A DNA stretch of 64,000 nucleotides. Origin: Octopus sinensis (lineage: Eukaryota). The notes beneath the pieces are model-generated. The model saw only the letters and a list, made by a program, of their open reading frames with translations, made no database searches and was not told where the DNA came from. The DNA lies in the NCBI RefSeq assembly GCF_006345805.1, contig NC_043026.1, positions 11,346,001 to 11,410,000 of the forward strand, given 5' to 3'. This document shows, piece by piece, positions 3,872-63,618 of this stretch. Made by a program: the position numbers and the translations under genes. Every line of letters starts with the position of its first letter. Position 1 is the first letter of the stretch.

Positions 3872-5668
3872 ATGGAAAACGTTAATTATTTGGATAGTTT
3901 CAACATAAATACAATTGCTCGAGCATGCAGTGATGAGAAACCTTCGCGAAGTGAATCATTAACTAAACGAACATCAGTAATTGGAAATATTCTTGAATAT
4001 TCTTGTGAGATTTGTAAGAAGAGTTTCTCTTCACAAGACGAAGTCTTGACACACAAAGAAATACACAACAGCAAAAGACTATTTCACTGTGGAATATGCG
4101 GGAAGCATTTTGCCTCTAACAGTAATTTAACAACCCACGGAAGGATCCACGCTGGGGAAAAACCTTTCCACTGTGAGACGTGTGGAAAGTCTTTTACTCA
4201 GAATTCGAGTCTTGTTATCCACAAACGCTGTCACACGGGGGAGAAACCGTTTCACTGTGAAATATGTCCGAAATCATTTGTTTCTAACAGTGATTTCACA
4301 AAACACAAAAGAATCCATAGTACAGAAAAACCGTTCCACTGTGAGATATGTAGGAAATCATTCTCCGATAACACTAGTCTAACTGTTCACAAAATGATCC
4401 ACACCGGTGAAAGACCGTTTCGTTGTGAAATATGTAGGAAATGTTTTATGAATAATTCGGGTCTTGTTATTCACTTACGGAGTCATAGTGGGGAAAGACC
4501 GTTTTGCTGTGAAATATGTGGTAAATCTTTTTTCAAAAACAGTGATTTAACAAAACACAAACGAATTCATACTGGAGAGAAACCATATCACTGTGATATA
4601 TGTGGGAAATCTTTCTCTGATAAATCTAATCTTTCAGGTCACAAACGTAGTCACACCAGGGAGAAACCATATCCTTGTGAAACTTGTGGGAAATGGTTTG
4701 TTTCTAAAAGTGTCTTAAAAACGCATTGTAGATTACACACGGGAGAAAAACCGTTCCACTGTGAAATATGCGAGGAATCATTTATCACTAAAGTTCTCTT
4801 GAAATCGCATGAAGCATTACACACGGGAGAAAAGGTATTTTGCTGTGAAACGTGTGGGAAATCTTTTACGAACAATTCTCATCTTTTAGTTCACAAACGT
4901 AGTCACACTGGAGAAAAGCCATTTCGTTGTGAGATATGTGAGAAATCATTTGTGGATAACAGCGTCTTAAGAAAGCACAAACGAATACACACGGGAGAAA
5001 AACCATTTCATTGTGTAATCTGTGGAAAATCGTTTCTCTCTAACAGTGATTTAACAAAACACAAAAGGATCCACTCTGGGGAGAAACCCTATTGCTGCGA
5101 AGTGTGCGGAAAGTATTTTGTGTACAACAGTGATTTTAACAGACACAAACGAATCCACACAGGGGAGAAACCTTATCGTTGTGAAATCTGTGGCAAGTCA
5201 TTCACCGATAATTCTAACCTTGTTGGTCACAAACGTAGTCATACTGGAGAGAGTAGTTATAGCTGTGAGATATGTGACAAGTCGTTCTCTGTTAACTCCT
5301 GTCTTGTCATTCACAGACGTTGTCACACTGGAGAAAAGCCTTATCGTTGTGAAATCTGTGGTAAATCGTTCGCTGATAATTCCCACCTTGTGGTTCACAT
5401 ACGTAGCCATACAGGAGAGAAACCGTATCAGTGTGAGATCTGTAAGAAGTCATTTGTCTCTAAAAGCGTCTTGACCATACACCATAGAACTCACACCGGG
5501 GAAAAACCATTTCACTGTGAAATATGTGGAAAATGTTTTATCACTAACGGCGTCTTAAAAACACACAGAATTATACATACTGGAGAGAAACCGTTTCACT
5601 GTGAAGTGTGTAAGAAATCGTTTATCACAAACAGTCTCTTGAAAAAACACAAACAGCTACACGTTTGA
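3872..5668 (+). CDS. C2H2 zinc-finger protein (ZNF1), 598 aa, 20 tandem fingers, intronless CDS
   Basis: Twenty CxxC-x12-HxxxH units with TGEKP-type linkers. No N-terminal effector domain recognised. Confidence 0.92.
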   Translation: MENVNYLDSFNINTIARACSDEKPSRSESLTKRTSVIGNILEYSCEICKKSFSSQDEVLTHKEIHNSKRLFHCGICGKHFASNSNLTTHGRIHAGEKPFHCETCGKSFTQNSSLVIHKRCHTGEKPFHCEICPKSFVSNSDFTKHKRIHSTEKPFHCEICRKSFSDNTSLTVHKMIHTGERPFRCEICRKCFMNNSGLVIHLRSHSGERPFCCEICGKSFFKNSDLTKHKRIHTGEKPYHCDICGKSFSDKSNLSGHKRSHTREKPYPCETCGKWFVSKSVLKTHCRLHTGEKPFHCEICEESFITKVLLKSHEALHTGEKVFCCETCGKSFTNNSHLLVHKRSHTGEKPFRCEICEKSFVDNSVLRKHKRIHTGEKPFHCVICGKSFLSNSDLTKHKRIHSGEKPYCCEVCGKYFVYNSDFNRHKRIHTGEKPYRCEICGKSFTDNSNLVGHKRSHTGESSYSCEICDKSFSVNSCLVIHRRCHTGEKPYRCEICGKSFADNSHLVVHIRSHTGEKPYQCEICKKSFVSKSVLTIHHRTHTGEKPFHCEICGKCFITNGVLKTHRIIHTGEKPFHCEVCKKSFITNSLLKKHKQLHV

Positions 5669-10980: not shown

Positions 10981-11842
10981 TATTGGGTTGTCCAGAAAGT
11001 TTGTGCCGATTTTTAAAGGAAAGAAAAAAGGTCAATAAATACTTGCCATTACATTTTTAATCAACGAAATATGAACCATTTTGCTGCACAATGTGTCTCC
11101 ATCTTTCCTTTAACTTGAAAATACCCTCTTCCCAGAATTGAGGTGGTTTCATGGCAAAGAATTCATCAAGGTATATTTTTACATCATCCAAGGAATTGAA
11201 ATTTTTACCATTAAGACTATTCTGCAGAGACCTGAATAAGTGGAAATCCGAAGGAGCAATATCTGGTGAATATGGAGTGTGGGGTAACACATCCCAGCCA
11301 AACTGCAGCAATTTTTGTCTGGTTCCCAAAGCATCAAGTGCCAAAAATGAACTTTCTTATCTTCCATTTTAAAGGGTTACAGAATTAACACAGATTATAG
11401 GAACATAAACCTTCTTCTACGAAAAGATAGCTTAAACTGTGCTCTAAACGGAGGTGTAGTCAAATCCTATTTTATGGACTCAAACCATGTTCTAAAATAA
11501 GTCGAAAGGTAAGCTACTATAAATCGGCACAAACTTTCCGGACAACCCAATATCTTGAGAGATAAGCACAGCTAGCTTAAACTGGGCTCTAAATGGAGGT
11601 GTAGTCAAATCCTATTTTATGGACTCAAACCATGTTCTAAAATAAGTCGAAAGGTAAGCTACTATAAATCGGCACAAACTTTCCGGACAACCCAATATCT
11701 TGAGAGATAAGCACAGCTAGCTTAAACTGGGCTCTAAACGGAGGTGTAGTCAAATCCTATTTTATGGACTCAAACCATGTTCTAAAATAAGTCGAAAGGT
11801 AAGCTGCTATAAATCGGCACAAACTTTCCAGACAACCCAATA
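10981..11842 (-). mobile_element. Internally deleted mariner element with triplicated 5' end
   Basis: TIR TATTGGGTTGTCC-GAAAGTTTGTGCCGATTT at 10981 and its inverse ending at 11552, 11697 and 11842. TA at both ends. Remnant transposase contains MEDKKVHFWHLMLW and WDVLPHTPYSPDIAPSDFHLF. Confidence 0.9.
11057..11372 (-). pseudogene. mariner transposase remnant (N-terminal stub fused to C-terminal catalytic part)
   Basis: The PYSPDIAPSDF motif is diagnostic of mariner transposases. Most of the ORF is deleted. Confidence 0.85.
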
Positions 11843-12653: not shown

Positions 12654-13748
12654 CTATTGTATATGAATACTTGCATGTTTTTTTAAGTGAATCCTTTGAG
12701 GGAATGTGTCGCCACAGATATAACACTGGTATGGTTTCTCTCCTGTATGAATACGTACGTGTATAGTTAACTCACTTGTTCTAGAGAAAGATTTACCACA
12801 GGTAACACACTGATATGGTTTCTCTCCTGTATGAGTAAATATGTGTGAAGTTAGGTGACCGTTTCGAGAGAATGATTTACCACAGATATCACAGGAATAT
12901 GGTTTCTTTCGTGTGTGGCTTTGCTTGTGTTCAGCCAAACAATCACTTTGAGAGAATGATTTACCACAGACATCACAGAGATATGGCTTCCCCATATGAA
13001 TTTGTTTGTGTTCACCTAAGCGATCTTTTCGAGAGAATGATTTACCACAGATATCACACTTATACGGTCTCTCTCCCGTGTGAACCCGTACGTGTACAGT
13101 TAAGTCACCACTCTGGGAGAACAATTTACCACAGATGTCACAGTGATATGGTTTCTCTCCTGTGTGAATCCGTTTGTGCATAGCCAAGTTGCTTATCTGA
13201 GAAAAGGATTTACCACAGATTTCACACTCATATGGCTTCTCTCCTGTATGACTTCGCATGTGTATCGTTAAATTAATGTTTCGAGAGAACTTTTTACCAC
13301 AGATGTCACACTGGTATGGTTTCTCTCCCGTGTGAGTATGCTCATGACTAGTTAAACCACAACCTTCAGAGAATGGCTTATCACAGATACCACAGGGATT
13401 TAGCTTCCTTCTTGTATGAATTTGCTTGTGTCTAGTTAAACCAGAACCTTGAGTGAATGATTTGCCACAGACATCACACTGATATGGTTTCTCTCCTGTG
13501 TGAATACGTTTATGATTAATCAAAATACTACATCTAGTGAATGAATCACCACAGATATCACACTGATAGGGTTTCTCTCCCGTATGGGTACGTGTGTGTA
13601 TTGTTAAGTAATGACTTTTTAAGAATGATTTCCCACAAACATCACAGTTGTATGATGTTTTCCCTTTCTTTTTATTCATGTCACTAGGGAAATCAATACT
13701 TTTAACTGTCTTAAGTTGAGACTTGTTCACACACAATTCATTTTCCAT
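12654..13748 (-). CDS. C2H2 zinc-finger protein (ZNF2), 364 aa, 12 fingers
   Basis: MENELC N-terminus shared with paralogs. TGEKPY linkers. AATAAA at 12618-12623 (-). Confidence 0.92.
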
Positions 13749-16548: not shown

Positions 16549-16952
16549 GGTATTTGGCTTTGAACAATCATGGGAGATTGCTAGTGTTGATCGACTTAAG
16601 GAGGCTTTCGTCGGGTCTATTCCTCTGCTACCATACTCCAGTCCTCTTCTGTCACACATAAACAACGCATTATTTATGAATAGGATGACCAAAAGTGCAA
16701 AAAAAAACCCATTAACCATTTTAAAGTCCCTCGAAAAATAAAACTGCAAAACTTTGCCCTTCCTATGAATTTTCCCGTGTTTCATGAACATTTTTCCCCC
16801 ACGATTTTTCATATAGATAGATTGCCCTTCAATTACTGCCTCTTTGGAGATTCATATCTTCTAAACATTCAAATGTTTCAGAGAAATATACAGTGTTGAA
16901 AATAACCATGGAATTCCCACAGGTACTGCCAGTCTGTATTGTTACATCTTAC

Positions 16953-17100
16953 CTGTTATACTGCATAAATCTGTGATTGTAGTGAAATACCTTGAAGCAG
17001 ATCTTATTCCCGACAGAATTTAAGCAAGAAGTAAATTGCTAACAATAGAAATTACAAAAATCGGCTCGGAAACACAAACGGCGAACAAGCACCAAGAAAA
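16953..17100 (-). promoter_or_regulatory. Predicted promoter and non-coding exon 1 of ZNF2
   Basis: Paralog-conserved block ending in ACAG|GTAAGA at 16953/16952. Confidence 0.6.
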
Positions 17101-20565: not shown

Positions 20566-21261
20566 TTACAGTCGTACGTGAATACCTACATGTTTTGTTA
20601 AGTGAGTCCTTTGAGAGAATGATTTGTCACAGATATCACACCGATATGGTTTCTCTCCAGTATGAACACGTTTGTGTGTAGTTAATTGATTTTTTTGTGA
20701 GAATGATTTACCACAGATATCACAGTTATATGGTTTTTCTCCTGTGTGAATACGTTTGTGTATAGCTATGTTAGTTCCATGAGAAAACGATTTACCACAG
20801 ATATCACAGTGATATGGTTTTTCTCCTGTATGAATACGTTTGTGTATAGCTATGTTAGTTACATGAGAGAATGATTTACCACAGATATCACAATGATATG
20901 GCTTATCTCCTGTATGAATCCGCTTGTGTGAATTTAAGTGAGAATTTCGAGAGAATAATTTGCCACAGATAACACACTGATATGGTTTCTCTCCTGTGTG
21001 GACACGTTTGTGTATAGTTAAATTACTACATCGAGCGAATGATTTACCACAGATGACACAATGATACGGCTTCTCTCCTGTATGAATACGTTTGTGTGCA
21101 GTCAAATGTTCTTTTAGAGCAAACAAGTTACCACAGATATCACAATGATAAGGTTTCTCTCCTGTATGAATATGCTTGTGTTCAGCTAAGCATCTCTTCC
21201 GAGAGAATGATTTACCACAGATATCACAGTGATATGTAGTTTTCCCCTTCTCTTTATTCAT
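20566..21261 (-). CDS. C2H2 zinc-finger protein (ZNF3), 8 fingers; ancestral start interrupted by TAA
   Basis: 231-aa ORF from the internal ATG at 21261. The upstream in-frame ATG (21333) is followed by TAA at 21322-21324. AATAAA at 20520-20525 (-). Confidence 0.75.
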
Positions 21262-28870: not shown

Positions 28871-29056
28871 TATATATATGTTTCAACACACGAACTCAAA
28901 TAAAGAATCTTGCAAACCAAATCCAAAAACGAAACAAAAATAAGAGCTAAGAAAAATAATTCAGAGCAGAAATTTGGGCAATAAAGGCAAATAAAGTTAT
29001 ACAAAACACCATACATGATAAATTTATCATTTATTGAAACAATCATTGACAACCTG

Positions 29057-29257
29057 AATTGATATGGTTTCTCTCCAGTATGAGTAAACATGTAACCATT
29101 TCAAGAGAATGATTTACCAAAGATATGACAGTGATATGGCCACTATCTTGTGTGAATACATTTGTGTAATGCCAAGTAAATACTTTGATAGAATGATCTA
29201 CTACAGATAATAAAGTGATATGGTTTCTCTCTTGTGTGAATAAGTTTGTGTCTAGTT
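29057..29257 (-). pseudogene. Degenerate zinc-finger tail in the ZNF4 3' UTR
   Basis: Reads HKLIHTREKPYHFIICSRSFYQSIYLALHKCIHTR*...HTGEKPY. Followed by AATAAA at 29030-29035 (-). Confidence 0.7.
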
Positions 29258-30053
29258 CAGTGCTTTTCAAACTTTTTGCTGAGAGAATGATTGACCACAG
29301 ATTTCGCACTCATATGGTTTCTCTCCCGTATGACTATGTTTGTGTACAGTTAAATCCGAACTACCATAGAAGGATTGACCACAGATATCACAATGATATG
29401 GCCTTTCTCGTTTATGAGTATGTCTGTGCCTAGTTAAGTGAGAATTTTGAGGAAATGATTCACCACAAATATCACACCAAGGAACCCCAAGGAAACATTC
29501 CACTGGCTCGAGGAACCCCTGTGCAATAATTTAATAGTCTTATGCACACATATCTGCACAGGAGAATTAAAAATTACTGCCGATTTTAGCAGTTTTGTAA
29601 CTTCTTGTGGAACCCCTGGACTGTACTGGTGGAACCCTGGTTGAAAGTGTGGAAGCACTCCATCGGTTACGATGACGAGGGTTCTGGTTGATCCGAATCA
29701 ATGGAACAGCCTGCTCATGAAATTAACGTGTAAGTGGCTGAGCACTCTACAGACACGTGTACCCATAACGTAGTTCTCGGGGATATTCAGTGTGACACAG
29801 AGAGTGACATGGCTGGCCCTTTGAAATACAGGTACAACAGAAACAGGAAGTAAGAGTGAGAGAAAGTTGTGGTGAAAGAGTACAGCAGGGATCACCACCA
29901 TCCCCTGCCGGAGCCTCGTGGAACTTTTAGGTGTTTTCACTCAATAAACACTCACAACGCCCGGTCTGGGAATCGAAACCGCGATCCTATGACCGCAAGT
30001 CCACTGCCCTAACCACTGGGCCATTGTGCCTCCACCCTGGTTGAAAACTACTG
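29258..30053. mobile_element. hAT-type MITE carrying a captured ZNF fragment and a nested SINE
   Basis: 8-bp TSD GTCTAGTT at 29250-29257 and 30054-30061. TIRs CAGTGCTTTTCAA and TTGAAAACTACTG. Confidence 0.85.
29647..30033 (-). mobile_element. tRNA-derived SINE (family C, body type c) with 13-bp TSD
   Basis: TSD ACCCTGGTTGAAA at 29634-29646 and 30034-30046. Homologous to about 46292-46635. Confidence 0.85.
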
Positions 30054-30097
30054 GTCTAGTTAATCGACTTGTTACAGAGAATGATTTTAACAGAATA

Positions 30098-31210
30098 TCA
30101 GTAATCTGGCTTCTCTCCTGAATGACCTAATTTGTGAACAGCCAAACAATCATTTCGAGGAAACGACTTACCACAGATTTCACAGTGATTTGGTTTCTCT
30201 CCAGTATGAACATGTTTGTGTCTAGTTAACTCAGCATTAGTACAGAAGGATTTACCACAGATATCACAATGATATGGTTTGTCTCCTGAATGCCTTCGTT
30301 TGTGTATCATTAAGCAACCCTTCCGGGAAAATGATTTACCACAGATTTCGCAGTGATATGGTCTCTCTGCTGTGTGAATACGCTTGTGGAATGTTAATTG
30401 ACCACTCTGAGAGAATGACCTACCACAGATATCACAGCGATATGGTTTCTCTCCTGTATGAGTACGTTTGTGTTTAGTTAAATCACCACAACAAGAGAAG
30501 GATTTACCACAGATATCACATCCATATGGCTTCTCTCGTGTATGTGTATGCCTGTGCCTTGTTAAGTGAGAATTGTGAAGAAATGATTTATCACAAATAT
30601 CACAGGGATATGGCTTCTCTCCTGTATGACTTCGTTTGTGTATAATTAAGCAATCCTTTCTAGGAAATGATTTATCACAGATATCACAGTGAAATGGTTT
30701 CTCTCCTGTGTGAATGCGTTTGTGTAATGTTAATATACAACTTTGAGAGAATGATTGACCACAGATTTCGCACTCATATGGTTTCTCTCCCGTATGACTA
30801 CGTTTGTGTACAGTTAAATCAGAACTACTATAGAAGGATTGACCACAGATATCACAATGATATGGCCTTTTTCGTTTATGAGTATGTCTGTGCCTTGTTA
30901 AGTGAGAATTTTGAGGAAATGATTCACCACAAATATCACACCGATATGGTTTCTCTCCGGTATGAATATCCTTGTGCATTCTTAAGCTACCGCTTTCAGT
31001 GAATGATTTACCACAGATATCACAGAGATATGATTTCTCTCCAGTATGAGTAGTTGTGTGTCTTTCTAAGTGCTCACTTCTAGAGAATGATTTACCACAA
31101 ATATCACAGTGACAAGATGTCCTCTGTTTCTTTTTATCACTGGAAAAATCAATGCTTTCAATCTGTAATTTAGACTTAAACTTATTCTCACATAATTCAT
31201 TTTCCATCAT
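30098..31210 (-). CDS. C2H2 zinc-finger protein (ZNF4), 370 aa, 12 fingers
   Basis: [12 protein letters not shown]-terminus. TGEKPY linkers. Confidence 0.92.
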
Positions 31211-34125: not shown

Positions 34126-34926
34126 TTGGAGAACCTGCCCGATAGGATATTTAACGAAGATGGAACGTCCATGAGAGTGTCAGTGGAGGGGCGCAGACCT
34201 AGGTGTTTTAAATGTGGCGAGAAGGGTCACGTCCGCTCGAACTGCTTAAAAAAAAAGAAAACCAACGAAGCCCCTCTTCAAAGTGCTTCTAACACTGAAG
34301 GGGAGAAGGCGGGAAAAGAAAACAAGACGACGACAAGCAAAGAAACAGAAACGGAGGATTGTATCGAACAAATGGATTACACACAGGTGACACACAAAAG
34401 AAAAAAAGACAACACCCTGGACTCCCCTCCCCAAACAAGGAAAAAATCAGCAAGCACCGCAGACATACACACAAAGCAAATTCCCCAGCCCTACCCCCAT
34501 GGCACTGTATTCATTGGGAAACAGTTTGCCAAGCCCCTCCCCATAAAACAAGATGTAAAAAAGTCTTTAAAAAAAAATGATAAGATCATTGCTTTTGATA
34601 AAAAAAACGAAAGGGTATATAAATACTATAAATTTTCAAAATTTAAACTATTTAGCAAGGCTACAGACATAAAAGCAACCACTCGCTTCGCAAAAATAAA
34701 GGAAGACGAGTGGAAGGAGGAAATACTACAAGAACATCTAAAGAATAGACTGATTAGAGATGTAACAAAAGAAGTACTGGAGGGTAAACTTGTTATAACC
34801 CCGGCAACCACACCTACCCAGAGCCCGGTGGCAACGCCGGTTAAGAGCCCTGCAGCTACGACCACAAGGGAGGAAGAAGGGGAAGCGGGCAGATTTAAAC
34901 TGTCATGCTCCCTTTCTCAACCGTAA
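34126..34926 (+). pseudogene. LINE ORF1 C-terminal portion (gag-like zinc knuckle)
   Basis: CFKCGEKGHVRSNC motif. No ATG; 5'-truncated. Confidence 0.8.
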
Positions 34927-34952
34927 GTTCATTTATTTTTCTCTCACCGACA

Positions 34953-37900
34953 ATGGCTAAGCTGGGTTGTGTGAATGTACGTGGAATGGGGACGAAATGG
35001 AAACAAATTTGTTTCCTGAACGACCTCACGACACATGGAGTAGACATAGCTATTGCAACCGAGTCCAAGATGAACGAGGCCCAAGCGTTCTCGCCTCTTC
35101 TAAATGGGTTCGAGAAATTTATTTCTCCTAGCCGAGGAAGAGGCAGAGGCGTGGCAGTCCTTATCAGGAAGAGCTTGGACTTGCAGGTAAGTACTGTCTT
35201 TCTGGACCCAGAAGGCAGGCTGGTTGTTCTGGATGTGACCCACGTAAGTAAACAGTCCTTCAGGTTGGTGGCTGTCTACGCTCCGAACGAGGGTAGACAG
35301 ACGGGTTTTTTTCGGAACCTGGAGCCCTTTTTAGCGACGTCGAAAACGGTAATCTTAGTAGGGGACTTTAACACTGTCCTTGAAGCGCGGGTCGACAGTG
35401 TTGGCTCAACCAATAGGAAGGGGAACCCTAGCCTCAAGGGTCTACTAGAGAGCTTTGATCTAGTGGACCGTTACCGACTGGATGAGCCGAGCGTTCCACA
35501 GTGGACGTGGAGTAACAACGACGGCTCACACAGATCGTATTTAGATAGGATATTTATTAAGAAAAGAGATAAGGATACGTTTAGTTGTCCACAGTTTCAC
35601 ATTGTGCCTTACACGGATCACAAATTTGTGACGTGTAGGATGCAATTAGACAAGTGTCATAGACAGGGACCCGGGTACTGGAAGCTGAACAAGGCTATTT
35701 TGAATTGTGAAGACTTCCGTACCCGGATTAAGGTGTTAGTACAGAGGGCATTGTGTGGCACCATCATTAACAATAGATGGTGGCACTCCCTCAAAAGAGC
35801 CATTCGTTCAGAGTCCATTAGATTTAGCAATCAGCTAAGGTTAGATAGGTCTAGGATAGAGGACGATTTAGTTAAGAATCTAAACGAGGCAATGGAAGCT
35901 GGCTCTGCATCCGGAGTGATGGCGGCAAGGACGGTATTGTACCGTCACCTTAACTCCAAACACGAAGGTTGCAGAGTCAGAGCTAAGCTACGCGCTGGGA
36001 AACGAGAAGGTATTAACGTTGCCGGATGGGCCCGTCGAGTGGAGAGTCAGAGAGGTAACAAAGCCTCAATCAAGTCTTTAACTGACGAACAGGGACAAAA
36101 GATCTATGGACAGGAGGAGATGCAAAAGTTTCTTCACCAGCATTTCGCCCGCGTGTTCGGGGGTGGTGCGGCGCCGGAGCGGGGGAGGACCTTAAAGGAC
36201 TTCCTGGCCGGCGGACCGCGGCTCTCGGGGCGTGAGGTGGAGTGCTGTGAAGAAGCGATCACTCCCGCGGAGATAGAGGGGATACTGGCCGGATGCGCCG
36301 GGGAGAAGTCGCCGGGGTTGGATGGTCTGCCCTACGAGTTTTACCAAAGTATGCCGGACTTGTTCGGGGGAATATTGGCAGGCGTCTACACGAACTGGCA
36401 GCAGAATGGGAGAATTCCCAGTTCTGTAAGCCGGGGAGTGGTGATGCTAATCCAGAAAGACCCGAGCAAGGGGGATAACATTAGTAACTACAGGCCCATA
36501 ACTCTACTTAATGTAGAGTTAAAGATTTTGGCCAAGGTGTTGGCAAAAAGGTTGACGGTTGTCGTGGAGAAACTTGTAGGGAAAGCACAGACATGTGCAA
36601 TTCCAGGCAGGTCGATCCAGGACAATCTTCACCTTATACGCTACACCTTAGATAGGGTGGGTAAATTAACCGGCAAGGGCGGGGTAATGGTCCATTTAGA
36701 CCAAAGTAAAGCGTTCGATAGGGTAGACCATGAGTACCTGGCGACGGTCCTCGAAGCGGCTGGACTGGGCCCTGAATTTCGCGGGTGGATCTCCGCTATG
36801 TATAGCGGCATCAAGTCCACCGTCCAGATAAACGGTTACCTAACGGAACCGTTTCCGATCGAATGTTCAGTTCGTCAAGGGTGCCCCTTGTCACCACTTT
36901 TGTACGTGTTGGCTCTTGAGCCATTACTGCGAAAGTTGGAGAGGCTGGGAAGTAACTCGGATGAGATCGGAGGTGGGAGGACGGTTACTGCTTATGCGGA
37001 TGACGTCACCCTCATCGTGTCCAATGAGGCCCAGCTACCTTGTGTGGAAGAGGCTATCAGAGGATACGAGGCGGTGGCAGGAGCAAAGGTTAACAAGGAC
37101 AAGTCGGTTGGCTTGCGCCTCGGCACCTGGAGGAGCAAGTCGATATCGTCCAGTGTCGTGGGACACTGGACGGATGGCCCTGTTAAGTTGCTAGGAGTTT
37201 GGTTTGGGCCAGACTCCCAAACGGAGAGGAACTGGAGTGAGGTGACGAGCAAGGTGGAGGCCATAGTACGGACCTGATCCGGAAGGTTTCTGTCCTTGAA
37301 ATGAAGGGTGGAGGTGGTACAGATGTTCATTGCATCTGTAATCACTTACCGCCTGACCGTTGTCCCTTGCCCCGATTCATGGCTTAGCAAGTTGGAGCGA
37401 ATCCTTTTCCGCTTTTTGTGGAAGGGAGGAAAGCCACTTGTGAGGCGCTCCGTTTGCTGCCAGGAACCGTTAAAGGGTGGGTTAGGAATGCCTTGGTTGA
37501 TGATGCGCAGACATGCGTTGAGGCTGAAGCATCTCTGGCACCACCTGGAGGGTGATAAGGTGTGGAGTCCGCTGGCAGGGGAATTTTTCCCGAGACCGGC
37601 CTCCTTAGTGAATTTTAAACCCGGTCGCATCAAAAGATGGAAACTGACTTTATGGCAAAAGGAGTGCCGACAGGCACTCACGCTGATCCACAAGGCGGGC
37701 AAGGCCGGCTGCGGAAATACCACCTCGGTATTTTATAGAAGGCTGGTAGAGGCAAAGAACGACGACGTCCTAGGAGGGGCTCTGGGGTTTGACGAAGACC
37801 AGCTTACCAACCTGTTTAAAAAGACTTTCAGGACGGGGTACTTGGATAATTTCCAAAGATCCCTGGCCTGGCAGTGCTATAGGAATGCTTTACCTGTTCG

Positions 37901-38342
37901 CGAGAAGTTATCGCGGCACGGAATTTCAGTGCCACCGACGTGTCCAAGGTGCGAGTTGGACGATGAAACCGTCCAGCACGCTTTTGTACACTGTCGGAAG
38001 TTGTCCGACTTGATAAGTTACGCAGAACACGTGTTATCGCATCTGGGACGAGTACAGCTGTCGGCTGAGTCTATGATTAAGATGATACCGCCAACTGGAC
38101 TCTCGAAGGAAGGTGAGGCATGTTTTCACTGCACGGTTGCAGTAGTAAAAGAATGCATGTGGCGAACAAGAATGGAAGGAGTCGCGATAGGATCCTTTGT
38201 CTCGGGCCCCGGCTTGCTCACTTACTTCAGATATCATCTGAAGAGCAAAATGGGGCTGGAAAAGAGGATCTTACCACGGGGTGTGTATGAGAAAAGATGG
38301 AAGGAAGTGGAAAAAAAGGTGGGTGTCAGAAACCCAGCTTAA
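34953..38342 (+). pseudogene. LINE ORF2 (APE endonuclease, reverse transcriptase, zf-RVT) with two in-frame TGA stops
   Basis: Motifs NVRG, GDFN, TDH, KSPGLDG, YRPITLLN, KAFDRV, RQGCPLSP, YADD and CPRC-x-ET-H---C. TGA at 37275-37277 and 37302-37304; reading frame unchanged across them. Confidence 0.9.
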
Positions 38343-43908: not shown

Positions 43909-44778
43909 ATGATGGAAAATGAATTATGTGAGAATAAGTTTGAATCTAAATTACAGATTGGAAGCATTGGTTTTTCCAGTGATATAAAGGAAGAGAAACT
44001 GAAATCATCCTATCACTGTGATACCTGTGGTAAATCGTTTTCTCAAAGTGGTGCTTTAAGTAAACACAAACGTATTCACACAGGAGAGAAACCATATTGC
44101 TGTAATATTTGTGGTAAATCATTCACTCAAAGTGGCTGCTTAGTTGTACACAAACGAAGTCATACTGGAGAAAAACCATATCACTGTGATATCTGTGGTA
44201 AATCATTCTCCCAAACCTGTCAATTAACTCGACACAAACGCATTCACACAGGAGAAAAACCCTATCATTGTGATATCTGTGGTAAATCCTTTTGCGATAG
44301 TGGTGATTTAACTAAACACAAACATATCCATACTGTAGAGAAACTATATCACTGTGATATGTGTGGTAAATCATTCTCTCGAAGTAGCTACTTAACATTA
44401 CATACACGTATTCACACGGGAGAGAAACCATATCCCTGTGATATTTGTGGTAAATCCTTCTGCCATAGCGGTGATTTAACTAAACACAAAAGAAGTCATA
44501 CAGGTGAGAAACCATATCACTGTGATACCTGTGGTAAATCATTCTCTCAAAGTAGTCACTTATCATTGCACAAGCGTATTCACACAGGTGAGAAAACATA
44601 TCACTGTGATATCTGTGGTAAACCAGTTTCTGAAGTTGGTAAGTTACCTAGACACACACGTATTCACACAGGAGAGAAATCATATCACTGTGATATCTGT
44701 GTTAAATCATTCTCTCAAAGTAATCACTTAGCATTGCACAGACGTATTTACAAAGCCGTGAAACCATATTTCTGGTAA
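43909..44778 (+). CDS. C2H2 zinc-finger protein (ZNF5), 289 aa, 9 complete fingers (some variant), truncated by frameshift
   Basis: [12 protein letters not shown]-terminus. Ends KPYFW* where CACTGTGATA appears to be deleted. Degenerate fingers continue to about 46215. AATAAA at 46242-46247. Confidence 0.88.
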
Positions 44779-49340: not shown

Positions 49341-49591
49341 ATTTTTTGCCGATGACACTCCCTTCCAGTCAAACCGTCCAACCCATGCCAGCATAATCAA
49401 CAGACGTGAAATGATGATGTATACATATATATATATATATATATATAATATCACATGACCGACCAGTCCATCAGATGTAGTTTCACATCGCTGGTCACAA
49501 TGCGTTCGCATTGTTTTAGCCTTCGAATGACGCCACCCCGCTGGCTAAGCGAGCAGGCCAACAGAAGAAAGAGTGGTGATAGAGTACAGCA

Positions 49592-49595
49592 AGGA

Positions 49596-49626
<31 letters not shown>

Positions 49627-49647
49627 GTACATATATATATATATATA

Positions 49648-49735
<88 letters not shown>

Positions 49736-50058
49736 TATACATATATATATATATATATGTACATATACATATATATATATATATATGTACATATACATAT
49801 ATATATATATATGTACATATACATATATATATATATATGTACATATACATATATATATATATGTACATATACATATATATATATATATATGTACATATAC
49901 ATATATATATATGTGTACATATATATATATATGTACATATACATATATATATATATATGTACATATACATACATATATATATATGTGTACATATATATAT
50001 ATATGTACATATATATATATATATATGTACATATACATACATATATATATATATGTAC

Positions 50059-50120
<62 letters not shown>
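49592..50120. repeat. Long (TA)n/(TATATGTACA)n compound microsatellite
   Basis: About 530 bp of AT repeat punctuated by GTACA and CA. Confidence 0.95.
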
Positions 50121-50884
50121 ATATATAGTTCATGTTTTTAGAAAAAGAAAGACGGAGATAGTTCTTTGTCTTCACAAGACATTCAAAAACAGATTTTATT
50201 GTTCTGTTGTTGATATGTCTTTGTGGCCATACCTGACACTCTAAACTACGAAAACACTTTGCTGCACTTTGAATCTCTAAAGATATTTCTGAACCGAATG
50301 TCCCATCTCCTTTCCTTGCACTCCTCACTTGTATTAAGGATTCAACCCTTACAAAGACAACCTTCCACGTATACTCTTTTACTTGTTTCAGTCATTTGAC
50401 TGGGGCCATGCTGGAGCACCACCTTTAATAACGGGAGTTATTCTTTTGTAAGCCCAGTACTTATTCTATCGGTCTCTTTTAATTTATCGACCCCGAAAGG
50501 ATGAAAGGCAAAGTCGACCTCGGCGGAATTTGAACTCACAACGTAACGGCAGACGAAATACCGCTAGGCATTTCGCCCGACGTGCTAACGATTCTGCCAT
50601 TCGCACGTCACACTCCGTTTTCTCTACAAAATACGGAAAAAAGCCGACGTTTGTTAAGAATACAATGCAAGGGAAGTAACTCTCTCTATATCTGTATCAG
50701 TTGATCGTAAACTTTCTTTCAACTTCGGTTGGTAGAGTTTCGAATATTTTATCTTTCCCTTGTCTCCGTCATTGCAGTGGAGCTATGCTGTGGTACCAAT
50801 TTCTTTATTACACACAAGGGGCGAAATACAGCCTGATTGGGGTCAGACACACAATGATTATATGACTTTTAAAATTTTACTAAA

Positions 50885-54718: not shown

Positions 54719-54962
54719 GATGTCACTAGTGCTGGTAACTTCGCAGCTACCCTATTTATAGCTGTCAAGTAGGCTCAGCAGATGAACAGTTTTTGCAAAT
54801 CGGCGCCGTTCATTTTCATTGGTTGAACTTGACAACTATGTCACGTGACAAAAGCCCGCTTATTTTTCACCTGCTTCTCGACTGCTGGAGCCGATTAAGC
54901 AGTATTTAAAGGCGAAAAGCTCTATATAATTTTTAGTTACACACTAGTATCGAACTTTGAAA
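54719..54962. promoter_or_regulatory. Divergent H2B/H2A promoter
   Basis: TATAAATA (-) near 54750, ATTGG (CCAAT box) near 54818, GTCACGTGAC near 54840, TATTTAAA near 54903. Confidence 0.75.
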
Positions 54963-55340
54963 ATGTCTGGACGTGGTAAAGGAGGAAAAGTGAAGGGAAA
55001 GAGCAAGACCCGTTCATCCCGTGCTGGACTTCAGTTCCCTGTCGGTCGTATCCACCGTCTTCTCCGTAAGGGAAACTATGCCCAACGTGTTGGTGCCGGA
55101 GCTCCAGTCTACTTGGCTGCAGTGATGGAATATTTGGCTGCCGAAGTGTTGGAATTGGCAGGAAATGCTGCCAGAGACAACAAGAAATCGAGAATTATTC
55201 CCCGTCATTTGCAGTTGGCCATCCGTAACGACGAGGAGTTGAACAAACTTTTGTCTGGAGTGACCATCGCCCAAGGTGGTGTTCTTCCCAACATCCAGGC
55301 TGTTCTTCTCCCCAAGAAGACCCAGAAGGCTTCCAAGTAA
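54963..55340 (+). CDS. H2A: Histone H2A, 125 aa
   Basis: MSGRGKGGK...[12 protein letters not shown]...LLPKKT. ATG at 54963. Confidence 0.99.
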
Positions 55341-55373
55341 GCGCTTTCTGTGGAGTCTACCTTCAGCATCAAC

Positions 55374-55389
55374 GGCCCTTTTCAGGGCC
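55374..55389 (+). terminator. Histone 3' stem-loop (H2A)
   Basis: GGCCCT-TTTC-AGGGCC. Confidence 0.9.
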
Positions 55390-57089
55390 CGCTACATCAT
55401 AATTTTAGTCTACTTACCGTTTATTTTGCGATCCGATTCTTCATATGACATCACAAACCGTCCGTGCTTCGTAACCTTATCTGTTTACTATTCTTTTCTT
55501 GATTGAACCCCTCTAGCTATTTGATGCTTAAAAGCTTGCTTTACAGGTACACTTTGTTAGCCGTAGTTTGTAAATAAATGCATCTAAGAAAAATTCTGAT
55601 CCAGGCACACCGTATGGGCCCCTCGACTTTATTTCACAACGCTGGATTCATGCGATTTAGCTAAGAATTTTGGAGTGCATTTAACCATGGGAGAAGGATT
55701 TTTCAGTTAAAAGAAATTCAAGTATATTCAGGCTGTTGTTTCTAGCACATCCCACGTCTACCTTGATGTTTTTCAATAGTTTTCGCTGCGAATGCGCACA
55801 TGCTACTAAAATTTTCCCTCCCATTGTTTTTAATAAAATATTAGAAAAAAGGTACCTTATTTTTGTTGCTACTAAAATCTTCCCTCCCGTAAGGGTTTAT
55901 TAACTGTAACCTTTTTAGCAAGGAGGAAATATTATTATAAAAACCGCCTCCCTCCCAACTTCCATTCTCCGGATCGGTTTTGTGGGCACTACGCACTTTT
56001 TAAAAACTACAGAAATATTTTCGGCTGTTCTTTCTAGCATAATAGCATACACCATGACCAGCTTCCACGTTTCAGGTCATGGGACATGCCAGAAGGCCTT
56101 TAAATCACTCTTTTTCAGTGCCTACAAAATCGGTCCGGAGAGGGTAAGGTTTAAAAACACTTTTAAAAAGATGCTCCAGATTACTTGCAAGGGGTACTGT
56201 GAAAAAAAGTCTGAAAAACCCGTCAAAACGGGGAATCTCCCACTTATGTGAGCTACTATCTCTGACGTCCGCCAATTTTTTATCCCCTCTCCATAAATCC
56301 TAGAATTTCCACTCCTGGAAAATTTGGACTGTCCGAACCCGCAATTTGTTTTATAGTTTCTAACTAATTTCCAGATGAAAGATTGTAACTTTAGCTATTT
56401 CTAAGACATCCCACAGCCACCTTCCTCGCCTTTTGTTACTAACAGCAATGCTTTTCTCCAAACACATTTGATGCAAGTTTTAAAGTAGTCCATAAAATCA
56501 TTTCTAAAAGCAAAGTTGCAGATTCGGACTGCCCATTATTTTTAAACGAGAATTAAATTCGAAAGAGTATGGATTCCTGTGTACAACACCGCAAAAATTA
56601 GTCAATTTTCAGACTAACACCCGCACGATTCCCGAAAAATTTGCATATCAAAATTTCAACGACCTGCCCCCTCATTTTTCAATTTTCCGGGAATCATTTC
56701 ATTTTGGCGAAATATGTAGAAAAATATGAAGATTAATTCTGATAAAAATTGGGTTTGTAAAATCTCAATTTTCCAAAAAAAAAACTATATATATATATAT
56801 ACCCCTAGGCCTTCAAGCAGAGTATCAGTCAAATCCAAAAAACTGCGATAACATAATGTAACCAATCTAGTCAACTTTCTGCAAAGATGTCTCTCAGTAA
56901 TGACAAAGTAACCGAAGTAATTTAGGTGAAATTAAAGTGGAAACTTTCCTTAACTTTTATAAAAACTGTTTTCGAATCTTTTTCCAATCTAGTGGGAAAA
57001 TACGGAGATTAAAAATATGGAAAAACTCAAACTTATTTTGCAGCATGTCCGATATTGCGACCTAAATTAAGGTACGCCTTACGTAATGA

Positions 57090-57254
57090 TATTTCTGTAT
57101 TGCCCATAAGGGTTTACATAGATGGGGACAATACAATGATTTGGGGTCATGTGCACGAAATGGAACTATTTTACAGGGAAATCGAATGGATCATTCACAA
57201 TGAAATTGAACAAGAACAAACAAAAAGGGTTCACACAGATGGGGACAATACAAT
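57090..57254 (-). mobile_element. Short retro-insert (Tx1-type tail) with 14-bp TSD
   Basis: GCCTTACGTAATGA at 57076-57089 and 57255-57268. Confidence 0.75.
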
Positions 57255-57368
57255 GCCTTACGTAATGAGCCGAGAGGCTCACTGAAAGGGAGAAAAAGGA
57301 AGCTGAAATTCAAATATTTTGGATGAAGCATATCGAAAAGGTGAGGTGGCTTACATTAAGATATGAGT

Positions 57369-57384
57369 GGCCCTGAAAAGGGCC
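57369..57384 (-). terminator. Histone 3' stem-loop (H4)
   Basis: GGCCCT-TTTC-AGGGCC followed by ACTCA. Confidence 0.9.
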
Positions 57385-57432
57385 GGGTTTTGTCGCTACC
57401 CACGACCTCGAAGTTACAAAAACTTCACCAGC

Positions 57433-57747
<315 letters not shown>

Positions 57748-57972
57748 TCAGATGTATATTTACTTAAAAGCAAAAGTGCATTAACGGATAGCTTCTGTAG
57801 CAAGTATTTATACACAGCACGCAGACGTAGCAGAGAACACTACAAATTAGAGATCACGTGTCTAAATCAGCGAATCATAGCAATGCGTTTGGCAGCTGCT
57901 GTTTGGCGCTTTCTCTTTGTGTTCTGAGAGAAGGTGTTGGCGCTTAATTTGGTTTGTAGATAAAAAGTTTAG

Positions 57973-58452
<480 letters not shown>

Positions 58453-58486
58453 GTTGAAAATAACGAAGCTACTGCTTTAGCCCAAC

Positions 58487-58502
58487 GGCCCTTTTCAGGG
58501 CC
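58487..58502 (+). terminator. Histone 3' stem-loop (H3)
   Basis: GGCCCT-TTTC-AGGGCC. Confidence 0.9.
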
Positions 58503-58793
58503 TCTAAATTTTTTCGTAAAGTTTTGCTAACCCTTAAGATAGTGGTGTGTTCTCGTGTCGTGAATTGTTTATTCGAAATGACGTCGATATATTGTTCTTT
58601 TCCGTAATTTTTTTGTGACTAATGTTCATTCCTCGTGAATTTATTCCTGTTGGAACTGACGAATTAAGCTTTTGGGTTCGTCCAATTGCATTTTTAAATG
58701 GGGCTCGGAAATTTCACAAACTTAGATCTACATGAAAAGGTTTGTGTTCCCGATTCGCTCTTGTTTTTTGTGCATGTATCTAAACGGAACTTG

Positions 58794-58977
58794 GGATCGG
58801 CTATCCTGTTCTTTTCACTTCATATGTCCCTTTTTGTTTGTTCTTGTAACTCATTCAATTTCATTTTCGTTGTAAATAATCCATTCGATTTCACTGTAAA
58901 TAGTTCCATTTCATCCACATGACCCCAAATCATTGTATTGTCCCCGTCTATGTAAACCCTTATGGGTAATAAAGAAA
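58794..58977 (+). mobile_element. Short retro-insert (same family as 57090-57254) with 17-bp TSD
   Basis: TATCTAAACGGAACTTG at 58777-58793 and TATCTATACGGAACTTG at 58978-58994. Confidence 0.7.
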
Positions 58978-59843
58978 TATCTATACGGAACTTGCAGCAC
59001 AAATAAACCATAACCGTCATTAGTTCAAGTTTTGTGATATTTGAATTTAGTTGCGAGTGAATCGGAACGAATTGTCAGATTCCATTTCTTTTTAGTTTAA
59101 AGGAGACAAAGGCTGAATGGCGCGCACGTTTCATAAAATAAAGTTTTGATGTGTGCGGTTCTGCATCCGATCTGAAGGGTTTCTATTTGTAGAACACTTA
59201 TTCAAAAATTCAATTTTATGGAGGACTGCTCACTCAATTTGGAATATGATAGTCCTTAATCCTTAGTCATTCGTGATGAGAGAGCTTCAATGAAAATAAC
59301 GAAGCCACTAGCCCTTTTCAGGGCCTCGAAATTTATTTCCGAAGTTACTTCGTGTACACCGGACTTTTTTTTAAGAACCATTTTTTCGGATTCCTGCGTT
59401 TATGTGAAAACAAATCAACTTTTCAAATTTCACCCCTTCTCCCAGTTTGAAATTTTAATTTTGTTTACCTTAAAGGGATCGTAGCGAATTAAACATGCAA
59501 ATCGAAATTAAATAAACAATAATGTGAACAGAATTTGTTTCACGATTTCAAAATTTTAAATTCAATAAGCATATAGATATGAAGGTTTTGACTGCTATTT
59601 CTAGCATGGTTAGTATCCCTTAGATACGTTTAATTATAATTTTATATATATAGATATAGATATGGATAAACGGATGGGGATACCTTAAAGAGGTAGCGAA
59701 TTGACAAACATGCCGGTCAAAGCGAAAAGATCCGAAGTGAAATATAAGCAATAAAGTGTGTGCGTGGGTACTATTTAAGAAGAGTGGTTACCTAGCAAAG
59801 TAAATAAAACACAAAATACATTTTTTTTAAAACAAAGTAAATA

Positions 59844-60230
59844 GGCGCAGGAGTGGCTGTGTGGTAAGTAGCTTGCTAACCAACCACATGGTTCCGGGTT
59901 CAGTCCCACTGCGTGGCATCTTGGGCAAGTGTCTTCTGCTATAGCCTCGGGCCAACCAATGCCTTGTGAGTGGATTTGGTAGAAGGAAACTGAAAGAAGC
60001 CTGTCATATATATGTATATATATATATATATATATGTGTGTTTGTCCCCCTAGCATTGCTTGACAACCGATGCTGGTGTGTTTACGTCCCCGTCACTTAG
60101 CGGTTCGGCAAAATAGACCGATAGAATAAGTACTGGGCTTACAAAGAATAAGACCCGGGGTCGATTTGCTCGACTAAAGGCGGTGCTCCAGCATGGCCGC
60201 AGTCAAATGACTGAAACAAGTAAAAGAGTA
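59844..60230 (+). mobile_element. SINE family A
   Basis: Consensus match. Confidence 0.9.
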
Positions 60231-60533
60231 AATAAAGCAAAAACACAAAGTAAGGATCGAGTGCGAGTGCGCGCACCGGGACCACTCTTCTTAAATAGCA
60301 CGTTGTCAGTGTGGACAAGAACAAGCACACACACACACAGCCTTTCTCCTCCCATTAAAAGATGTTTTTTTGTTGGAAGAAAAAATGCCGCAATAATTAT
60401 GCACCAACCAATATACACATATCTATATGCTTATTGAATTTGAAATCTTGAAAACTTTGATTTCTTGTATATTCCGTATTTCCGTCATCGAAAACAGAAA
60501 TCTGCGGAACAAGAAATAAAAATCGGAAAGGTC

Positions 60534-60920
60534 TGTTTTTGTGAGGGGGCGGAAGGGATTCTGCACCAGGTCCATTTCATGAACCCAAATCATTGTATTG
60601 TCCCCATCTATGTAAAACCCTTATGGGGTAATAAAGAAATAATTCTGCACCAGGTCCGCTGGAGAGACGGGGTGAAGTTTGAAAAATTTAAAATTTGGGG
60701 AATTATAAATTTGGACGTTTTTGTGAGGGGGCGGAAGGGATTCTGCACCAGGTCCATTTCATGAACCCAAATCATTGTATTGTCCCCATCTATGTAAAAA
60801 AACCCTTATGGGTAAATAAAGAAATAATTCTACACCAGGTCCGCTGGAGAGACGGGGTGAAGTTTTTAAAAAAATTTAAAATTTGGGGGATGTTGGGGTG
60901 GGGATTATAAATTTGGACAA
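60534..60920 (+). repeat. ~183-bp tandem duplication, each unit holding a ~68-bp retro-insert with 16-bp TSD
   Basis: ATTCT(G/A)CACCAGGTCC flanks ATTTCATGAACCCAAATCATTGTATTGTCCCC...AATAAAGAAATA in both units. Confidence 0.8.
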
Positions 60921-61781
60921 GGTGGTTTCAAAAAAATTTCCAAAAGAATTTCAAAATTTTAAATTGGGGAGGGGAGGTGGAATGAAATGTGAAAAGGGTT
61001 TTTTTTTTTTCGTTTTTGGTCACTATAAAGATCTTCACCCGGGAACGATAAAAGGAATTAACCAGACTGGAACGGGTGTGTTTAATAAGTGTGTGGGGAA
61101 AAAAATAGGAAAAAAACGATGTGCACTGACGACCCTGGGGGTAGGGAGGGGATTTTCGGAAAATTCACAAGATCCGATTTTTCCGTCATAAATTCGGGTA
61201 AAATGGATATATATTGATTTTTTTTTCTAGCAGAATCCCACGTTTTTGGTTATGGAAGATCTGATTCTGAAAAAAAAAATCTTTTCAAAATTCCTTTGTT
61301 ATCGCAGATTTGTGAGATTTGGCTGTTATTTCTAGCACGTGGGTGGATAGCCGGCTTGAAGGCCTGAGTTGACAGAATCGTAATCTTACGGCATTCGTTA
61401 TTTTGTATCGGATATCTTCGCGACCTCCGTGACAGTTACTAAAATGGAAGGAGAAAGGTAAAGGGTTGCGCGTGCGTGCTTGCTTGCTCTTGTCTGTGTG
61501 TGCGCCCTTTTTCCCGTCAGGGACAAGCACACGCACACACAACCCATTCGCTTTCTCTTCCCATTTTAGTAGCAGTCACGGGGCTAAGATATCTGAAGTG
61601 AATTGTCGTGTTGTCACGGAAGCAAGCGAAGTTTTATTGTCAAATCGAGTTAAACCGAAGGAATGCAATATGTTATATTTATTCAAAAAGCCCCTATTAT
61701 AAACCACTCCCTACAAAATTACTATAAAGCATATTACAGTAAAAATCCCATTCGGAATAATCAAGCAGAATTCGTATCTAC

Positions 61782-62154
61782 ACTCTTTTACTTGTTTCAG
61801 TCATTTCACTGCGGCCATGCTGGAGCACCGCCTTTAGTCGGGCAAATCGACCACGGGACTTATTCTTTGTAAGCCCAGTACTTATTCTATCGGTCTCTTT
61901 TGCCGAACCGCTAAGTGACGGGGACGTAAACACCAGCATCGGTTGTCAAGCAATGCTAGGGGGACAAACAGACACACAAACATATATATACATATATACG
62001 ACGGGCTTCTTTCAGTTTCCGTCTACCAAATCCACTCACAAGGCATTGGTCGGCCCGGGGCTATAGCAGAAGACACTTGCCCAAGATGCCACGCAGTGGG
62101 ACTGAACCCAGAGCCATGTGGTTGGTAAGCAAGCTACTTACCACACAGCCACTC
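61782..62154 (-). mobile_element. SINE family A
   Basis: Consensus match. Confidence 0.9.
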
Positions 62155-62576
62155 TAATTTTCGCCACTACTATATGTATAAGGCCTGTGCGGGGGTCGGA
62201 TGTGAGATGCTATGTACAAATTACACTATCACTTTCACGGCTGGGACACTTTCCCCTCACTCACGTCAATTCTATTTGCTGCAATAAAATCCAAATTGCC
62301 TACCTCGTATTTCAGTTCGTTATGTGTGGATATGACTAGGGCTCGTTTAAGGTTAACATGCAATTCCGAAGAGAAAACAGGATCGAAAGAATTGGATGCA
62401 TCACCGAACCCAGATCAGATGTCCCCATTGCTTGCCCAGAACAACCCCTTATCCTACCTCGGCGATCAAAAGATCGTGCTTCGAACGACACCACGTAGCG
62501 ACACGTATATCGTGAATAACAAATAAAATCGCAGATCTATAGAAAATCGATAGTTTACAATCACGAAAATGTAGGT

Positions 62577-62592
62577 GGCCCTTAAAAGGACC
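62577..62592 (-). terminator. Histone 3' stem-loop (H2B copy 2)
   Basis: GGTCCT-TTTA-AGGGCC. Confidence 0.9.
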
Positions 62593-62615
62593 GTTTTTTT
62601 TCAAGAGACCAAGAT

Positions 62616-62993
62616 TTACTTGCTGCTGGTGTATTTGGTAACAGCCTTGGTACCTTCAGAGACGGCGTGCTTAGCCAACTCCCCAGGGAGAAGCAGACGG
62701 ACAGCAGTCTGCACCTCACGGCTACTGATGGTTGAACGTTTGTTGTAGTGGGCCAAACGGCTGGATTCAGAAGCTATTCTTTCGAACAAATCGTTGACGA
62801 AACTGTTCATGATGGACATAGCTTTGCTGGAAATACCAGTGTCGGGGTGGACTTGTTTCATTACTTTGTAGATGTAGATGGAATAACTTTCCTTCCTCTT
62901 CTTCTTGCGCTTCTTGTCTCCTGCGGGACGTGAAGTTTTGGCCTTGGAAGCCTTCTTGGCTCCTTTCGAAGCGGTAGCTGGTGCTGGTGGCAT
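62616..62993 (-). CDS. H2B: Histone H2B copy 2
   Basis: Protein identical to copy 1. Confidence 0.99.
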
Positions 62994-63240
62994 GATGTCA
63001 CTAGCGCTACTGCTAACTCTGCAGCTACCCTATTTATAGCTGTCAAGTAGGCTCAGCAGATGAACAGTTTTTGCAAATCGGCGCCGTTCATTTTCATTGG
63101 TTGAATTTGGCAACTATGTCACGTGACAAAAGCCCGCTTATTTTTCACCTGCTTCTCGACTGCTGGAGCCGATTAAGCAGTATTTAAAGGCGAAAAGCTC
63201 TATATAATTTTTAGTTACACACTAGTATCGAACTTTGAAA

Positions 63241-63618
63241 ATGTCTGGACGTGGTAAAGGAGGAAAAGTGAAGGGAAAGAGCAAGACCCGTTCATCCCGT
63301 GCTGGACTTCAGTTCCCTGTCGGTCGTATCCACCGTCTTCTCCGTAAGGGAAACTATGCCCAACGTGTTGGTGCCGGAGCTCCAGTCTACTTGGCTGCTG
63401 TGATGGAATATTTGGCTGCCGAAGTGTTGGAATTGGCAGGAAATGCTGCCAGAGACAACAAGAAATCGAGAATTATTCCCCGTCATTTGCAGTTGGCCAT
63501 CCGTAACGACGAGGAGTTGAACAAACTTTTGTCTGGAGTGACCATCGCCCAAGGTGGTGTTCTTCCCAACATCCAGGCTGTTCTTCTCCCCAAGAAGACC
63601 CAGAAGGCTTCCAAGTAA
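63241..63618 (+). CDS. H2A: Histone H2A copy 2
   Basis: Protein identical to copy 1. ATG at 63241. Confidence 0.99.

Follow-up and report, generated by a model that had tools for sequence, protein, structure and literature searches.

A survey of 100 animal genomes recovered 370 Pack-TIRs, 208 of which were hAT elements (Tan et al. 2021, Nat Commun 12:4280; PMC8277862). Only ~1.4% of these animal Pack-TIRs were multicopy, the duplicated piece had a median length of 224 bp, its source usually lay on the same chromosome, and the authors attribute most of them to transposition-independent gap filling or template switching, and animal Pack-hAT elements formed by this route have been catalogued before (PMC8277862). 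The first description of gene fragments as filler in hAT elements came from maize Ds, where the authors suggest that capture resulted from errors of double-strand break repair (Du et al. 2011; PMC3260210). Plant Pack-MULEs and Pack-CACTA are likewise TIR elements with gene fragments between their ends; many are present in several copies, and their mobilisation has been demonstrated (PMC6379663). In the text of Tan et al. and the supplements searched, no name of an octopus, cephalopod or mollusc occurs (PMC8277862).

Here we describe an element of this kind in a 64-kb stretch of Octopus sinensis DNA (the whole stretch that was analysed, hereafter the window), which was assigned to assembly GCA_006345805.1, chromosome CM016888.1. 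Both family ends, an outer target duplication, an internal copy of the zinc-finger gene ZNF4 and a parental locus outside the element, the features by which Pack-TIRs are recognised, are all present. The element is like animal Pack-hATs in combining both ends with a target duplication, in the length of the copied piece (199 bp vs. the median of 224 bp) and in its same-chromosome source; it is also single-copy so far as found, belongs to the commonest carrier group (hAT), and has the same proposed origin. Unlike the catalogued Pack-TIRs, it carries a copy of the same gene in whose 3' region it lies, the copied piece belongs to a tandem zinc-finger array, and only 4 element nucleotides were lost, which also sets it apart from classical abortive gap repair with its large internal deletion plus filler. 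Maize Ds elements with filler resemble it as non-autonomous hAT elements with 8-bp duplications and interior DNA copied from genes. However, the filler of Ds usually makes up most of the interior, whereas the octopus element is otherwise intact, and in Ds2-22 and Ds-l4-354 donor and element are on different chromosomes, in contrast to a distance of 1.27 kb in the octopus. Pack-MULEs and Pack-CACTA differ from the octopus element in both superfamily and target-duplication length.

Five C2H2 zinc-finger ORFs are found in the window (3872-5668, 12654-13748, 20566-21261, 30098-31210, and 43909-44778), together with a LINE and a histone cluster. ZNF4 (30098-31210, minus strand) is an intact ORF of 370 aa with 12 C2H2 fingers and its stop at 30098-30100. 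Its fingers 7-9 (30408-30604) and 3-5 (30744-30942) share 83% DNA identity, an apparent older three-finger duplication internal to the gene. Three of the five ORFs (12654-13748, 30098-31210, and 43909-44778) have in common an N-terminal leader, M(M)ENELC(E/V)NK..., ahead of the first finger, and the gene table of a 21,095-bp record locus (L001, equal in sequence to window 2654-23748) lists a 392-aa product with a gene range reaching >10 kb upstream of the 12654-13748 exon; the shared leader and the range of this product hint at distant or shared 5' exons. The ZNF at 12654-13748, whose record locus ends at window position 23748, was the only exact-product match among the window queries. ZNF4 (370 and 369 aa), the 231-aa ZNF and LINE ORF2 had no exact product on record, and homologue searches with ZNF4 and the neighbouring ZNF returned generic vertebrate and insect C2H2 proteins only and recovered neither the orthologous locus nor the record of the query itself. 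An apparently intact non-LTR retrotransposon lies at 34126-38342 (ORF1 encodes a CCHC knuckle, the 790-aa ORF2 carries endonuclease and reverse transcriptase domains, and a zf-RVT ORF follows), and G+C reaches 0.53 within it (36001-38000) vs. ~0.39 in the surroundings. A long, compound microsatellite rich in TA/TG/CA (49451-50328) reads YIYIYM... in all frames and gives rise to several spurious ORFs of 170-270 aa. The histone cluster (54957-63618) adjoins the ZNF cluster and is composed of H2A (54957-55340, plus strand), H4 (57433-57744, minus), H3 (within 57985-58452, plus), H2B (62616-62993, minus) and a second H2A (63235-63618, plus) identical to the first.

Behind the ZNF4 stop the finger array goes on in decayed form (minus strand, 29040-29257, resuming at 30062-30097), and one of these remnants is interrupted by the element, with 44 nt between the stop and the element end. 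The element spans 29258-30053 and is bounded by 15-bp inverted ends and an exact 8-bp duplication, GTCTAGTT (29250-29257 and 30054-30061), which fits the family target pattern (central TA, CTAG core). Its 5' end (29258-29281, plus strand) consists of the TIR CAGTGCTTTTCAAAC (29258-29272) followed by TTTTTGCTG up to the point where the finger piece begins (hereafter the fill point), and aligns base for base with two unfilled copies at 11543-11761 and 16858-17058 of another O. sinensis scaffold (VCDQ01005406.1, hereafter L002). The 3' end (30034-30053, plus strand), with the TIR GGTTGAAAACTACTG at 30039-30053, can be aligned to the 3' end of every family copy, and the 5' TIR agrees with the reverse complement of the 3' TIR, CAGTAGTTTTCAACC, at 12 of 15 positions. 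The rest of the body (29479-29646, plus strand) carries GGAACCCC subterminal motifs and shows ~95% identity to the two unfilled L002 copies. When the element is taken out together with one copy of the duplication, the flanks join as ...KSFSVTSRLTRHKLIHTREKPYH..., a continuous decayed finger in a single frame, and the empty site translates as ...KSFSVTSRLTRHKLIHTREKPYHFIICSRSFYQSIYLALHKCIHTR*.... The original prediction, made from the letters of this DNA, had placed CAG-type TIRs with an exact 8-bp duplication just behind the ZNF4 stop and had claimed that removal of the element rebuilds a decayed finger, and it was right on both counts.

Nested in the 3' part of the element is a SINE-like dispersed repeat of 387 bp (29647-30033, minus strand), of which 10 partial copies occur elsewhere in the window. 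An exact 13-bp duplication, ACCCTGGTTGAAA (29634-29646 and 30034-30046, the latter within the MITE 3' end), lies on either side of it, and given this nested position the SINE came after the MITE, the same order and the same duplication as had been predicted. Neither ARAGORN nor Rfam assigned a tRNA or Rfam identity to the SINE head, and the label 'tRNA-derived' has box-A/box-B-like motifs recognised by eye as its sole basis.

Exact 8-bp duplications flank not only the window copy but also L002 11543-11761 (ATCTAGAC) and a longer relative in a metagenome contig, L003 (ATGTATAC), and in two more copies they are decayed (6/8). The family consensus end, the same at both ends, is CAGTGGTTTTCAACCT, from which the window copy departs by two changes in the 5' repeat and one in the 3' repeat. 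SPIN is a member of the Buster group of hAT (PMC12637253), and a survey of Anolis transposons gives CAGYGGTTCTCAACCT as the SPIN end and NYYTARRN as the target consensus of related hAT-N families (PMC3014272); the family consensus matches this end at 15 of 16 positions. A central TA is common to the four readable targets (GTCTAGTT, ATCTAGAC, GTCTAGGT, and ATGTATAC), three of which have a CTAG core, and, small as the sample is, they fit NYYTARRN. Thus, the family is like the SPIN (SPACE INVADERS) MITEs of tetrapods in its end (15/16), its 8-bp duplications fitting NYYTARRN and its length (about 200-270 bp), a likeness of end repeat and target pattern alone and not of internal sequence. The elements are short, non-coding, hairpin-forming and multi-copy (10 seen, i.e., eight unfilled, the L003 copy of 814 bp and the filled window copy). 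The precomputed gene tables of L001-L005 contain no gene of a hAT transposase family, the only transposase gene being a DDE_Tnp_1_7 (piggyBac-type) in L003. Taken together, the ends and target sites, on which alone membership is judged, support a non-autonomous hAT MITE of putative SPIN/Buster type. A target core (T/C)CTAG is shared by window 29250-29257, L002 11535-11542 and 17059-17066 and L008 ~1302-1309 (L008 being another metagenome contig). In finger arrays, (T/C)CTAG is the complement of the T-R codons in the recurrent helix motif LTRH, so ZNF arrays give the MITE repeated preferred targets.

No second copy of the non-finger part of the MITE is present in the 64-kb window, and a word-index search with the translated MITE yielded no candidates. 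An exhaustive HMMER search with the minus-strand translation of the MITE returned P0121, P0129 and four more distant ORFs. P0121, an O. sinensis gene model, is 98% identical to the translated MITE body over 55 residues; it reads ...WNVSLGFRSSKKFEKH and P0129 reads ...WNVSWGFRSYKKVENH, in both cases the body and then the end repeat with no finger between. Residues 184-238 of the 372-aa annotated P0121 (in L002) are a translated MITE copy running through its end repeat, and the deposited annotation includes transposon-derived pseudo-exons. The DNA of nine further copies was compared, two in L002, two in L005 and the others in L003, L004, L006/L007 and L008, of which L006/L007 and L008 were added by a pattern scan of JGI metagenomes. 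Eight of these nine relatives are 174-219 bp long and run uninterrupted through the fill point (...TTTTTGCTGGAGCGGAACCCC...), among them the two L002 copies, both unfilled and with ~95% identity to the window copy, and the finger piece occurs in none of the nine. These unfilled relatives place the finger piece inside the element. The ninth (L003 9426-10239) is an 814-bp relative with perfect ends and the exact duplication ATGTATAC, and ~650 bp of unrelated, AT-rich sequence take the place of ~53 bp at its centre; this copy represents either a second filler event within the family or a parent element of greater length. At 70-90% identity, the family is also seen in contigs filed as metagenomes (L003-L008, from ENA ERZ25067582 and ERZ25878500 and from JGI Ga0187744, Ga0187761 and Ga0187729). 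Intron-split isocitrate lyase and malate synthase genes are found in L005, and L003-L008 are eukaryotic host DNA within metagenome assemblies.

Within the element, 29280-29478 (199 bp, coding sense on the minus strand as in ZNF4) matches ZNF4 30744-30942 (minus strand, residues C91-Q156 of fingers 3-5) at 194 of 199 positions (97.5%), with five substitutions, no indels and the same orientation, and the identity of copy and source ends sharply at both borders. The copy covers finger 3 from its first Cys, continues through finger 4 and reaches into the beginning of finger 5, and Pfam recovers two zf-C2H2 matches in a 78-aa ORF (29267-29503) that spans the copy. This junction-spanning ORF has no exact product in records that do not cover the octopus genome. 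The window contains 76 other finger-to-finger matches, of which the best reaches 83.2% (30408-30604) and the others <=78.6%. An identity of 97.5% against this background designates the piece as a recent copy and not a family resemblance, and chance similarity between fingers is ruled out by the same comparison. A simple tandem or segmental duplication of fingers is ruled out as well, as MITE sequence colinear with the unfilled copies flanks the piece on both sides. The structure called by the original prediction, a hAT MITE with a host-gene fragment inside (Pack-hAT), is thus supported by the unfilled relatives, the hAT ends and ZNF4 as the best source in the window; the predicted match and orientation of the copy also hold, and its predicted length of 198 bp is to be replaced by 199 bp, starting at 29280. 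With fingers 7-9 as the outgroup, three of the five substitutions between fill and source can be placed on the copy and one on ZNF4, the fifth being ambiguous. Three of the five alter amino acids in the copy, which by its substitutions appears to have drifted neutrally. Since it lies after the stop, is without an ATG and has amino acid changes at three of five differences, the finger piece probably has no function; its position past the ZNF4 stop, its sense orientation and the missing ATG make a role as protein or hairpin RNA unlikely.

The junctions can be followed base by base. Unfilled O. sinensis copies read ...TTTTTGCTG GAGC GGAACCCCAAGG... at the fill point, the window copy reads ...TTTTTGCTG AGAGAATG...(fingers)...ATATCACACC AA GGAACCCCAAGG..., and the ZNF4 donor has ...CAACTTTG AGAGAATG... 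at the left border and ...ATATCACACC GATATGG... at the right one. The fill point lies at nt 24 from the 5' end of the element, where 4 element nucleotides (GAGC) are missing, and the remainder of the element is complete. At the left junction, a 2-nt TG (29280-29281) is common to MITE and donor (microhomology). The right junction has no clear microhomology, and AA (the first two bases of 29479-29646) stands where the donor has GA; these two bases either come from the donor, with one change, or are untemplated. Three-way alignment gives 5 private changes in 197 columns for the window MITE, and this figure set against 3-4 copy-specific changes in the 199 nt of the fill indicates that the fill is not older than the insertion.

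The family, its ends, both duplications, the fill point, the identity of the source and the sequences of the junctions are all directly established. A near-intact element, a templated insert from ~0.9-1.3 kb away on the same strand, one-sided microhomology and an end-join fit the repair of a break or fork in a resident element, and we consider it probable (roughly three in four) that a break in the resident MITE was repaired in place by copying from ZNF4. In such a scenario, a MITE of ~200 bp would have inserted in the decayed finger 44 nt behind the ZNF4 stop and produced the duplication GTCTAGTT. At a distance of 24 nt from the 5' end of this resident MITE, a hypothetical break or stalled fork would then have occurred; the hairpin predicted for an unfilled copy (z = -3.1) could plausibly be an obstacle to replication. 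The free 3' end (...GCTG) may have paired by its TG with ...TTTG in ZNF4 finger 5, a site 1,265 bp away today and 865 bp away if the SINE was still absent, after which 199 nt would have been copied through fingers 5, 4 and 3. Finally, the copying end would have dissociated and been rejoined to the element at GGAACCCC, with the loss of GAGC (4 nt) and the gain or alteration of AA (2 nt); the SINE may have inserted into the 3' part before or after the fill. Judged from the junctions, the loss of 4 nt and the TG on one side would agree better with a break within the element than with post-excision repair. Capture in place by template switching or gap repair had been predicted for this locus, and the fit is good (TG microhomology, cis source in the same orientation); the event itself, i.e., a fill at the present site, repair synthesis as its agent and the direction of copying, we infer. 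The element would then probably be a single-copy Pack-hAT formed by gap filling without transposition.

Capture may instead have come first, in a MITE residing elsewhere (probably nearby), the filled element moving afterwards into the decayed finger, e.g., by one of the local hops that hAT elements often make. A filled element that transposed would also leave a perfect 8-bp duplication and both end repeats, the divergence of MITE (5/197) and fill (3-4/199) is similar and compatible with either order, and multicopy Pack-hAT elements do exist in frogs (PMC8277862). However, only 24 nt of the element precede the fill, which stands before the first GGAACCCC, and by analogy with one tested Buster element, whose short ends transposed poorly or not at all (PMC12637253), an element split at this point would be expected to move badly. 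The absence of the fill from the nine other family copies, a source next door that is simplest to explain without movement and the single-copy state of ~98.6% of animal Pack-TIRs (PMC8277862) likewise speak against this order of events, which we regard as unlikely. If it were true, the filled element would have been mobile at least once. It is more doubtful still that the fingers derive not from ZNF4 but from another member of the octopus C2H2 family, a very recent paralogue located elsewhere. Octopus genomes do contain very large tandem C2H2 families (PMC12513265), and our comparison covered 64 kb plus ~41 kb of O. sinensis; yet nothing else in the five-gene ZNF cluster of the window exceeds 83%, and the ZNF4 segment lies 1.27 kb off in the same orientation, just as the cis bias of gap filling predicts.

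The original prediction went beyond repair in place and saw in the filled element a mobilisable zinc-finger cassette, and with it a possible route for finger shuffling. If this were true, SPIN-like MITEs residing in the zinc-finger arrays of octopus would acquire finger cassettes and transfer them to other ZNF genes, and transposon-driven finger shuffling would take part in the cephalopod C2H2 expansion; the preferred target of the family, (n)TCTAG(nn), does coincide with the -T-R- codons of LTRH. We consider it highly improbable that the filled element is, or recently was, competent for transposition in this way. The cassette is unsupported, with 0/9 relatives filled, a 5' end split from its motifs and a SINE inside the element, and nothing shows a contribution of the filled element to shuffling. 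With the fill in place, 199 bp come between the 15-bp 5' end repeat and the GGAACCCC subterminal motif nearest to it, and a tested Buster element with ends of 24-64 bp showed little or no transposition (PMC12637253); by this analogy, the split 5' end would argue against mobility, as would the SINE inside the element. The right junction had 0 exact matches in JGI metagenomes, a result that says little as octopus DNA is not expected there. Lastly, zinc-finger arrays and MITEs are rich in repeats and liable to be mis-assembled, but it is hardly credible that the PacBio-based assembly created the structure through a chimeric join or a wrongly collapsed repeat: 5 substitutions and 0 indels separate the copy from its source, the copy is embedded at a single point with clean junctions in an otherwise colinear MITE, the flanks of the element rebuild one finger in register, and a mis-join would not yield a matching 8-bp duplication with inverted ends.

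With repair in place from ZNF4 as the preferred reading, this locus is a very clean single case of a DNA transposon gaining a gene fragment, in which the ends, the duplication, the donor, the unfilled relatives and the base-level junctions are all visible. A lesson for annotation is that MITE- and finger-derived pseudo-ORFs are called as genes (as in P0121). Being a single, immobile and non-coding copy in a 3' region, the finger piece would be a by-product of repair and by itself says nothing on the diversification of octopus zinc fingers; the case adds a cephalopod and a SPIN-like hAT family to the range in which Pack-TIRs occur.
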